Source of the DNA: Macrostomum lignano
Lineage: Eukaryota
Assembly: GCA_002269645.1 (NCBI GenBank)
Contig: NIVC01002823.1
Location: 1-64,000, forward strand
Length of the DNA: 64,000 bases
Direction of reading: 5' to 3'
The notes under the pieces were generated by a model, which did no database searches, was not told the DNA's origin, and saw only the letters and a list, made by a program, of their open reading frames with translations. How positions within the stretch are numbered: the first letter of the stretch is position 1; every line of letters starts with the position of its first letter. The translations under genes and the position numbers were made by a program. Of the stretch, positions 36,101-39,100 are shown in pieces.

Positions 36101-39100
36101 ATCCCAGGGATACCAGAGATACCAGGGGATACCAGGGATACCATGGGATACTAGGGATACCAGGGATACCAGGGATACCAGGGATCCCAGGGATACTAGG
36201 GATACCAGAGATACCAGTGTAGTGATCCGCTAGTTGATGTTAGGCGTCCCACTTTGTCAGCAGTCTCCCTCGCCCTCGCCCTGGGTTGCTGTCTGCCGCT
36301 GGTCAGCTTCCCGCCCCCCTTGGCCCGTCTTTTGCTGCCCTTGGCCTGTTCTGCCCTTCGGCGTCTCTGTTCTCAGCCCTCAGCTTCTCTGCTGTGGGCT
36401 GTCTCTGTTTCGTTCCCGTCCCGTTTTTCTCTGTCATGTGAGCAAGTCACATGACAGACTCTGCGTTCTTCGAGTCCTAAAGTGCAGTAAACATGTTTAC
36501 TGCACTCGTTGGCCCTGTTTACCGGGAGAATCACGTGCTTTCGGAACCCTCCCTTCTCTAAGGAGAGGAGTGACTCATGTTGCTAAAAATAGCAACTGAG
36601 TCACAGCCGCGTGTACTCTGGCCGGAGACCTCAAGTGACGTCAGTTCTAAAAATAGAACGAGTCACGAGGTCTTGCGCGCACTGAGACCCTGCCTCGAGA
36701 TCTCAAGTGACGTCAGTTCTAAAAATAGAACAAGTCACGAGGTCTTGTGCGTGGGTGTTTCCCGGCTATAAATAGGACCCCTCTCCCCTTGTTTCCATCA
36801 AGGATTTGGCTTCTTATCTGCGGAGAATTTACTAAGATCCCGTGTGCGTCAGTGTCTAACTAAGTGCCCTTTGCGTACTGAATCCGTTTGTACTGGTCTG
36901 ACTGAGACCCCACTAAAGCCCAAGCCTAAGGGAGGCTAACACTGCCTTCCCAGCCACCCCTGAGCCCGGCGGGGATCTGCTGATCAGGACGCCTTGTTCA
37001 TTAATCTGCAAATCTGCACGCTGTGCTGAGTTCGTTGACTTGTTTATTTCGTTCCGATGGGAAGCTCACCTCATCGAAGGCTGAGACCTGAAGGAACTGG
37101 TGGCAGCACTACCTACGCTACTAAGAGTTAAGAAGGCTTCTGAGTGAGAGGACGGAGCCCAAGTCACTGCGCTGTACAGCAGGACAACCACAAGTACTTC
37201 ACCAGAGATACCAGGGGATACCAGGGATACCATGGGATCCCAGGGATACCAGGGATACCAGGGATACCAGGGATACCAGGGATACCAGGGATACCAGGGA
37301 TACCAGGGATACCAGGGATACTAGGGATACCAGAGATACCAGAGATACCAGGGGATACCAGGGATACTAGGGATACCAGAGATACCAGAGATACCAGGGG
37401 ATACCAGGGATACTAGGGATACCAGAGATACCAGAGATACCAGGGGATACCAGGGATACTAGGGATACCAGAGATACCAGAGATACCAGGGGATACCAGG
37501 GATACTAGGGATACCAGAGATACCAGAGATACCAGGGGATACCAGGGATACCAGGGATACCAGGGATACCAGGGATACCAGGGATACTAGGGATACCAGA
37601 GATACCAGAGATACCATGGGATCCCAGGGATCCCAGGGATCCCAGAGGCAATGATGACACCAGCAACACCAAGGAGTACGAGGGATTCTGGCAGCCCCAG
37701 GGATACCAGGTGCAACCGGGTGCTGTCAAGCACTTGAAAAGCGGCATTCCAAAAAGCACTGTCAACAGTTCAGAGCGTGCAGCAGACGGACTTTTCGGGT
37801 GTGCATATTTTGCAAGCCCTGACCCGATCGCATGGAGCATAGCCAGTATGAGAAGCGGCATATAAGGGTAAGTGGCGCATGAAAGCAGCAAGCGGCCTTG
37901 GCCAGGCCTCAGTGTGCAGCCACCAGCCATTCCGGGTTGCTCTCCGCAAGAGTTTTGAAATGAAAAGGAATGCCAAACTCCAAGCCATGCTGCAGGCTGT
38001 GCAATCAGCTTCAAGCCTGCGTGTTTACCATTATCTTGCTTCATTCTTACCAGAAATGAGCAAATCACGTAGAAAGAAATAAAATATGGATAGCCGATGA
38101 GCTGCTGGCACACCGGCTCCTCCTGAGTCCGGTTATGCGCCAGCCAATCAGCGTAGGCATCGCTGGCCCGGTCGCACTTGGTGTCGGCTGGAAGCAGTGG
38201 GGGGTTCGGGAGCGTGAGATTCGCCAGGCTGGGGACTCACCAGGAATGAGCACAGCATGTAGAAGCTGATAAAAAATGGATAGGCAATCGGACTGCCGCA
38301 GCCGTCCTCGATTTCGTCCGGCTCCAGCAGGTGGATCCGCTCCGCGGTTGAGTTGGCGTAGAGTCGCTGCACTTTGGCAACGAGCCTCGAGTACCAAGTC
38401 TGGTAGATTTCGCTCTGCTTGTCGCATAGCACTGTGGGCTCTGTTTAATTGGATTTGCAGCTGTTGGAGGGAGAACTCGGTTTCACCCCACGCGAAACTT
38501 TTTCTAGATTGGTTGGTTGGCTGAATCATCGTGATTGTCTTGTCTAGTTTTCCTACCCCTAACACAGATAAGCCAGCGCCGAGGCCCCATGTAGCTTCTC
38601 GCTGATTGGCTGGCTCATCGTGTTTGCCTTGTCTAGTTTTCCTACCCCTAACACAGATAAGCCAGCGCCAAGGCCCCATGTAGCTGCTCGCTGATTGGCT
38701 GGCTCATCGTGTTTGCCTTGTCTATTGAATAGTTTTACTACCCCTAACACAGAAAGCAGCCCTCGTTCGCTGATTGGCTGGCTCATCATGGCTGACTTGT
38801 TTTTGTCTCGATTTCCTAGCCTGGCCCGGGATATATGTAATTTATAAAATTTCGCCTGCAATTTGTCGTTGAACACCAAGTACATCGCAAGAGAATAAAA
38901 CGTAGTCAACGAGTAAAGTGAATCAAGACACTCGGCTCACCGTTGACGCAGGCCAGCAGAATCTCCTGCCAGGCCTCGCCCGTGGCTGAGCGAAACAGCA
39001 CCAGAGAAGCGGAGAAGAACGTCCTGAAGTTGTTGTTCCTGTTAATGTGCGTGTTGGAGTCCAGTCGGATTTTGCCGAACATCTGCATGCCGATCACGGC

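Follow-up and report, generated by a model that had tools for sequence, protein, structure and literature searches.

A tandem pair of homologous exons was identified in the Cav1 (L-type) alpha-1 calcium channel gene of Macrostomum lignano, most of which lies on the minus strand of contig NIVC01002823.1 (assembly GCA_002269645.1), positions 1 to 64,000; this 64,000-nucleotide (nt) stretch is referred to as the window. The two exons, A (38440-38241) and B (38187-38051), both on the minus strand like all window exons below, are probably a tandem-duplicated, mutually exclusive pair that provides the domain IV P-S6 loop (L6IV) and the outer part of IVS6. We infer that both exons are spliced into mRNA, one at a time, giving two isoforms. 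The mutually exclusive reading is based on the homology of the exons, the logic of the reading frame, the conservation of the pair in a paralog, and an RNA-based model of that paralog, which includes only the B-type exon.

Guide alignment and homology-based exon mapping placed the gene from IS5 (approximately 63813) to past the IQ motif (approximately 33200), with further C-terminal exons reaching approximately 29900; domain I S1-S4 falls outside the window. The four P-loops (TMEGW, TGEDW, TFEGW, and TGEAW) supply one Glu per domain (EEEE), and the channel carries a GPHH motif (DWSILGPHH) and an IQ motif after IVS6. The sequence matched Cav1 over Cav2 and Cav3, which, together with the EEEE, GPHH, and IQ signatures, identifies it as a Cav1 (L-type) alpha-1 subunit. 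The top database matches were four clusters of M. lignano proteins named "Voltage-dependent L-type calcium channel subunit alpha", the best named matches were L-type/Ca-alpha1D channels, and the best PDB matches were Cav1.2, Cav1.1, and Cav1.3. The UniProt models A0A1I8IQR8 and A0A1I8GUC8 (P0122 and P0244) are approximately 98.5% identical to the window exons, so the window contains that M. lignano gene or a near-identical copy. The domains PF00520, PF16905, and PF08763 are recorded on P0122.

The exon pair is flanked by two constitutive exons. The upstream one (39148-38941), which is exon 20 by paralog homology, codes for the last part of IVS5 and for the P-loop, along with the selectivity-filter Glu of domain IV; it finishes with LLACVN plus one base (G), exits in phase 1, and has the donor GTGAGC. 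After an intron of 500 nt (38940-38441), which holds a local tandem repeat of ~89 nt, exon A extends over 200 nt between the acceptor ...aattaaacAG and the donor GTGAGT, and it encodes a long L6IV loop with two Cys and an NST sequon, followed by the N-half of IVS6. The A-B intron has only 53 nt (38240-38188). Exon B, with 137 nt between the acceptor ...ctgcttccAG and the donor GTAAGA, encodes an L6IV loop of canonical length, with two Cys and an NRT sequon, and the N-half of IVS6. Both exons run from phase 1 to phase 0. An intron of 2343 nt (38050-35708) precedes the downstream constitutive exon, exon 22 (35707-35580), which enters in phase 0, completes IVS6 with its C-half, and continues into the proximal C-terminus. 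Inspection by eye led us to reject an internal intron in exon A, as the sole GT...AG candidate spans about 28 nt. Re-reading the minus strand confirmed every coordinate and figure of an earlier first-pass annotation of this DNA (exons of 200 and 137 nt, the 53-nt intron, phases, and junctions), and translation agreed with its description of two loop Cys and one sequon per exon (NST versus NRT) and a difference of 21 residues.

A and B are homologous over their full length (tblastn E ~1e-7, ~35% protein identity) and share the pattern CD[KR].S[ED].Y..W...N.T.E...C....YP.FISFY..CSFL. This alignment also upheld the earlier proposal that A and B supply L6IV and the N-half of IVS6 in two alternative forms. 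The exons are neighbouring, homologous, and identical in splice phases, as expected of a tandem duplication, and the agreement in homology, phases, and splice sites is far beyond coincidence. Their lengths compare as 200 versus 137 nt in the window and 176 versus 143 nt in the paralog described below. Elsewhere in the gene, only the IIIS3 exon has a nearby copy.

The reading frame admits either exon singly. Both are 2 mod 3 in length, and the 63-nt (21-codon) difference between them is in frame and restricted to the loop. Translation of the joined exons showed that exon 20 spliced through A or through B to exon 22 stays open. The inclusion of both exons had been predicted to break the frame, and translation did reach a stop in B, 13 nt short of its 3' end; omission of both likewise led to a premature stop, directly after ...VNDH.

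The same arrangement was found in an M. lignano paralog on contig NIVC01001668.1 (L001), the locus of protein PAA65287.1, for which a 29-exon structure was solved exactly. This locus harbors an intact A' at 49078-49253 (176 nt) and B' at 49342-49484 (143 nt), both 2 mod 3 with AG/GT sites, and A' has the donor GTGAGT. The A-then-B order in the window and in L001 indicates that the arrangement is older than the split of these paralogs. A' encodes DPQKVKCDLSSPGGNNLRQ(10) and then the remainder, including the S6 half. At the protein level, the upstream constitutive exon of the window is 97% identical to its L001 counterpart (48649-48856), and the downstream one is 100% identical. Of two further M. 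lignano paralog loci, the sequence retrieved for L002 stops immediately ahead of the A-type exon, and that for L003, the third paralog, includes the first 47 nt of this exon, starting with DPSVLCDKASDSYQA. The UniProt models of L003, which are ab initio, continue the A-type loop and carry a sequon where A has NST.

According to the first-pass annotation, the pair would be refuted if one exon were missing from all mRNA and free of purifying selection across species. The synonymous (pS) and nonsynonymous (pN) divergences between the window and L001 were compared. The synonymous divergence, approximately 0.5, is in the saturating range, and the nonsynonymous divergence is low. The constitutive exons gave a pS of 0.51-0.54 and a pN of 0-0.11. 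For the S6 half of A (20 codons), pS was 0.49 and pN 0.04 (pN/pS 0.086, Fisher p 4e-4); for all of B, pS was 0.67 and pN 0.20 (pN/pS 0.30, Fisher p 6e-6); and the S6 half of B gave a pS of 0.76 and a pN of 0.05 (pN/pS 0.07). Additionally, the type-specific residues of A and of B are each retained in L001. These ratios indicate that both exons are under purifying selection relative to the diverged paralog. As judged from the alignment, A is clearly constrained in its S6 half and at both Cys, not in the loop. Between the window and the paralogs, no intron conservation was detected, except at the 3' end of exon A. There, the last 33 nt of A and the GTGAGT donor (38273-38235) are identical at 39/39 positions to L001 49221-49259, compared with 86-90% nucleotide identity in the constitutive exons. 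This identity may reflect either an exonic splicing element or gene conversion.

Transcript-derived evidence comes from the Mlig_3_7 annotation; its basis is a genome-guided transcriptome for which RNA-seq data were processed with StringTie and TACO and de novo transcripts were mapped (PMC5730564). In the RNA-based model PAA65287.1, exon 20 (48649-48856) is spliced to B' (49342-49484) and then to 52962, and A' sits unused in an annotated intron of 485 nt. RNA-based models of different paralogs differ in which exon of the IIIS3 pair they include, so this family does use mutually exclusive splicing. We also queried protein collections with the isoform-A sequence. The 169-residue query found no Macrostomum match among 5.8 billion proteins, a comparison restricted to proteins of similar length, and the C-terminal-half query returned no Macrostomum protein in the returned length range. 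A representative search with P0122 produced no further Macrostomum sequences, and trematode A-like exons surfaced from it.

Several of these results weigh against mutually exclusive use of A and B. The RNA-based support comes from paralog L001 only, and no A-alone transcript or transcript-derived protein was found for any paralog in the searched protein collections. The selection tests span 20-48 codons only. The loop of A is poorly conserved: the L001 copy is not alignable, has gained a CAG/poly-Gln run, and has lost the sequon, so that one copy of A or more may be drifting. The 39/39 identity at the 3' end of A could be due to gene conversion and not to selection. The window gene might accordingly use one exon, the other being a silent relic of the duplication or an exon used only in other paralogs (subfunctionalisation). 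The diverged loop and the possible gene conversion fit such a history, as do the weak 3' splice site of A in the window and the fact that the sole RNA-based model covering the region uses B' and never A'. However, in both loci A and B have retained AG/GT sites, the right phase, and an uninterrupted reading frame, their S6 halves show a pN/pS of 0.07-0.09 at a pS of ~0.5, like the constitutive exons, and the third paralog keeps an A-type exon. The S6 half of A is also 85% identical to the trematode exon described below, which makes a dead copy unlikely. We consider the use of one exon possible, though unlikely.

A further difficulty is that the sole database models of the window gene, A0A1I8IQR8 and A0A1I8GUC8, include exon A followed by a 5'-trimmed B. 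Read literally, they describe the tandem inclusion of A and B through an alternative acceptor inside B, which would insert a duplicated half-S6. However, both models are ab initio predictions, the fusion of A with a trimmed B is a typical ab initio output on a mutually exclusive pair, and the same annotation fuses parts of both IIIS3 exons. The extra hydrophobic half-helix would reverse the IVS6 topology, the RNA-based L001 model includes B' alone, and no such tandem was found in other Cav1 channels among ~370 retrieved proteins, except for one obvious mis-assembly. Tandem inclusion is thus very improbable. Since M. lignano assemblies are highly redundant (PMC5730564), we also considered a haplotype-collapse artefact, in which the second exon would be an allelic copy misplaced in tandem. 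Nevertheless, A and B share only ~35% of their residues and are 63 nt apart in length, and the same arrangement occurs on an independent contig of a different paralog; an assembly artefact is therefore a negligible prospect. Mutually exclusive splicing of A and B, which the comparative and reading-frame evidence supports well, is the reading retained here as probable.

With respect to the enforcement of exon choice, exclusivity would be ensured at least by frame incompatibility, which would send a doubly spliced transcript to nonsense-mediated decay or yield a truncated product. A branch point too near the donor of A may reinforce it. The first-pass annotation had suggested steric exclusion because of the 53-nt intron, and part of this argument held. 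None of the 52 introns solved in three RNA-based paralog models is as short as the A-B intron; the smallest there have 76, 77, 77, 89, 93, and 96 nt, and the short constitutive introns of the window itself (81, 85, and 97 nt) are longer too. The A-B intron contains a single yTnAy branch-like motif (CTCAC), with 26 nt separating its A from the 5' splice site. In L001, the single yTnAy motif of the homologous intron has its A 36 nt from the 5' splice site, and in both loci a C-rich tract runs from the motif to the acceptor. However, the L001 intron measures 88 nt, inside the constitutive range (76-101 nt), so intron length alone cannot be the conserved exclusion mechanism. Steric exclusion is plausible, and the position of the motif leaves room for it. 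Exon B would be the default exon and A the regulated one: B has a strong polypyrimidine tract, canonical length, and documented use in the L001 model, and A combines a weak 3' splice site (tract ..caaatccaattaaacag) with a perfectly conserved 3' end.

The intron upstream of A offers a candidate selector. A 19-mer, ATGAGCCAGCCAATCAGCG, occurs there in three exact copies (38786-38768, 38707-38689, and 38618-38600, minus strand), which belong to the local 89-nt tandem repeat; the rest of the window and loci L001-L005 gave no match to this ~89-nt repeat. The copies are complementary at 18/19 positions to a target within exon B, CGCTGATTGGCTGGCGCAT (38153-38135, minus strand; codons ..YADWLAH..). 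Matches of the ATGAGCCAGCCAATCAGCG type number 4 in the window, compared with 0.04 expected. RNAfold of 38800-38040 paired one copy with exon B in both the minimum free energy and the centroid structures, with an overall z-score of only -1.55. The pairing is absent from paralog L001. We put forward, as a hypothesis and for the window locus only, an RNA loop in which exon B pairs with the upstream intron over 19 bp; this stem would leave A looped out and place the donor of exon 20 close to the acceptor of B. The 19-mer copies also hold a CCAAT-box-like core (AGCCAATCAGCG). A more extensive proposal, that the pair is a lineage-specific, selectively maintained splice switch of the pore module, conferring distinct permeation, gating, or auxiliary-subunit behaviour by cell type, with the choice made through the near-donor branch point and the threefold intronic selector looping out A, is speculative, and we regard it as rather doubtful.

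The pair was then compared across taxa. Among the 120 best full-length matches, RefSeq isoform series (Bombus, Nomia, Penaeus, and other insects and crustaceans) never differ at L6IV/IVS6; these matches also include single isoforms of molluscs and a nemertean. An examination of other flatworm Cav1 loci, as the first-pass annotation had proposed, recovered the duplication in paralog L001 and no second copy in two trematode loci. The Schistosoma mattheei Cav1 locus (L004) has a single short exon (15798-15896) with no second copy, and that of Opisthorchis viverrini (L005) has one exon of 621 nt (33238-33858), with no B-like sequence in the 3.5-kb downstream intron. An A-like Cav1 exon was found in O. 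viverrini KER32041.1, Paragonimus heterotremus KAF5404516.1, and Heterobilharzia americana CAH8510350.1; it starts with EPxVKCD..SD and ends as exon A does, and its loop has ~200 residues. This trematode loop (P0428 and P0430), carried by one class of trematode Cav1 channels, is sequon-rich, is encoded by a single exon, and represents an unusually large extracellular insert directly above the pore.

Exon B is colinear with the human Cav1.2 L6IV/IVS6, including both Cys and the sequon, and a metagenome contig scan revealed no B-like peptides. Due to its resemblance to the trematode exon, A looks like the ancestral flatworm version, and B would be a derived duplicate of canonical length. The literature searched on Macrostomum calcium channels, IVS6 exclusive exons, and flatworm L-type splicing did not describe the A/B pair. 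It did yield the vertebrate pairs at IS6, IIIS2, and IVS3, in agreement with the earlier statement that the vertebrate exclusive pairs are not at L6IV/IVS6, together with the work on Cav3 exon 12.

The two isoforms would differ in the loop, where 47 (A) versus 26 (B) residues separate the second Cys from the filter exon, and at four outer-IVS6 positions (A/G, F/Y, M/V, and L/I in A versus B). Consequently, the IVS6 pair reads YM in A and YV in B, from which two pharmacological isoforms had been proposed. The dihydropyridine site of Cav1 comprises Thr and Gln in IIIS5, Tyr, Ile, Ile, and Met in IIIS6, and Tyr, Met, Ile, and Asn in IVS6 (Y1463/M1464 and others in Cav1.2). This list comes in part from PMC6796685, according to which the IIIS6 Y-to-F substitution abolishes high-affinity dihydropyridine binding and flatworm Cav1 channels are poorly dihydropyridine-sensitive. 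In an ungapped alignment with human Cav1.2, both isoforms carry TFLLE in place of TTLLQ in IIIS5 (Q to E), F in place of Y in IIIS6, and MV in place of MM (M to V), and the window channel thus lacks a complete high-affinity dihydropyridine site. Among the 120 best full-length matches, furthermore, invertebrate Cav1 channels most often have Val or Ile at the IVS6 "M" position. The YM versus YV difference itself was found as proposed, but the dihydropyridine argument is weak because the key IIIS5 and IIIS6 residues are already substituted in both isoforms, and a physiologically meaningful change in dihydropyridine binding by the A/B swap seems less likely. In Cav3, swaps of the D4L6 and D2L5 loops alter Na+/Ca2+ passage (PMC7382465), which makes an outer-vestibule effect of the A/B swap reasonable. 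The swap would most likely act on the outer vestibule, permeation, or gating.

The same gene contains a second tandem pair, which covers the IIIS2-S3 linker and IIIS3 and thus a voltage-sensor segment. Its exons (50442-50336 and 48662-48556, minus strand) have 107 nt each, AG/GT sites, and phase 0 to 2, and lie ~1.7 kb apart. The pair is present in L001, L002, and L003, with a pN/pS between paralogs of 0.12 and 0.10. The RNA-based model PAA65287.1 uses type a, and PAA72656.1 uses type b and skips type a. The IIIS3 pair is mutually exclusive in the classical manner and sits one exon further downstream than the IIIS2 pair of vertebrates.

The UniProt models of M. lignano Cav1 (A0A1I8IQR8, A0A1I8GUC8, A0A1I8GT10, A0A1I8JEW8, and others) are wrong at both duplicated exons: A is fused with a trimmed B, the exon is omitted (..LLDC-IINLF..), or the halves of the IIIS3 exons are fused. 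Exact look-ups returned no on-record match for the UniProt models P0121 and P0125 or for a nested open reading frame (ORF) of the window. A same-strand ORF (42779-42363, minus strand) encodes a transmembrane segment and lies in the intron that follows the IIIS6 exon (44258-44057) and precedes the III-IV linker exon (41390-41232). We take its tail to resemble the Crumbs intracellular domain (FERM-binding GxYxPS and PDZ-binding ERLI). The homologous intron of L001 harbors a single-exon gene (40278-41504) for a protein of 408 residues with a signal peptide, EGF-like Cys repeats, a transmembrane segment, and the tail ...TGVYKPSDRELG...LRPPNEERLI. Trematode Cav1 gene models appear to include a similar segment (TM/GVYQPN). 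It looks like a crumbs-like gene has been kept nested inside the Cav1 intron. The window introns are also dense with long micro- and minisatellite arrays, among them a CTAT-like tetranucleotide run of ~1.5 kb and many tandem repeats of 15-90 nt (for example 56971-58509, 37144-37617, 31384-32073, 34272-35482, 49044-50243, and 54237-56001). These intronic arrays yield long spurious ORFs on both strands.

Provided that the A and B isoforms are both expressed, the pair would constitute a natural experiment on the length of L6IV and on four outer-IVS6 residues in an L-type channel, in an animal that is tractable for transgenesis. If the speculative switch proposal is true, a splice switch inside the pore module would give Macrostomum Cav1 cell-type-specific channel behaviour. 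Studies of flatworm Cav1 pharmacology or phylogeny that rely on current UniProt models should correct both duplicated exons.

Few splice events in four-domain channels are functionally as potent as the choice between alternative S6 or pore-loop exons, as in Cav1.2 8/8a, Cav3 12a/b, and NALCN 15a/b. The exon pairs of vertebrate CACNA1C (Cav1.2), namely 8/8a (IS6), 21/22 (IIIS2), and 31/32 (IVS3), are equal in length, and, like A/B, they are tandem exons that swap a transmembrane segment. In contrast, A/B lies at the domain IV P-S6 loop and IVS6 and has unequal lengths (200 versus 137 nt), and its origin is Macrostomum-specific and independent of the vertebrate pairs. For 8/8a, splicing regulators such as PTB are known. 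The 8/8a choice swaps the S6 pore-lining helix, and joint inclusion of both exons of a CACNA1C pair is aberrant (PMC3060452, PMC5059693, and PMC5748662). The IIIS3 pair shares with A/B the gene, the tandem arrangement, and the sameness of phase within the pair; its exons, however, are of equal length and do not belong to the pore.

As for the means of exclusion, exons 2/3 of alpha-tropomyosin are spliced exclusively by steric hindrance, due to the short distance from the 5' splice site to the branch point. A/B resembles them in the candidate branch motif, 26 nt (window) and 36 nt (L001) from the donor, a likeness of motif only. In Dscam exon 6 and 14-3-3xi, docking-site/selector RNA pairing loops out the unselected exon. 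The window locus shares with these genes a long-range complementarity, with three intronic copies facing one target, but one arm lies inside a coding exon, the pairing does not occur in the paralog, and A has no competing selector.

The trematode Cav1 L6IV exon resembles A in its start, its end, and its expanded loop; unlike A/B, it is a single exon. Invertebrate Cav3 12a/12b (the D2L5 turret) provides, like A/B, alternative Cys-containing extracellular pore loops above the filter (PMC7382465). The spliced Cav3 loop is the S5-P loop of domain II, whereas A/B belongs to Cav1. Cav3 D4L6 occupies the same loop position as A/B, and there the variation is between genes (in cnidarians) and not between exons. 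No exon pair at the domain IV P-S6/IVS6 of Cav1 was found in the literature searched or in the arthropod and mollusc RefSeq isoform series. Compared with these systems, A/B is a probable new instance of a well-known mechanism, at a new and functionally sensitive position.

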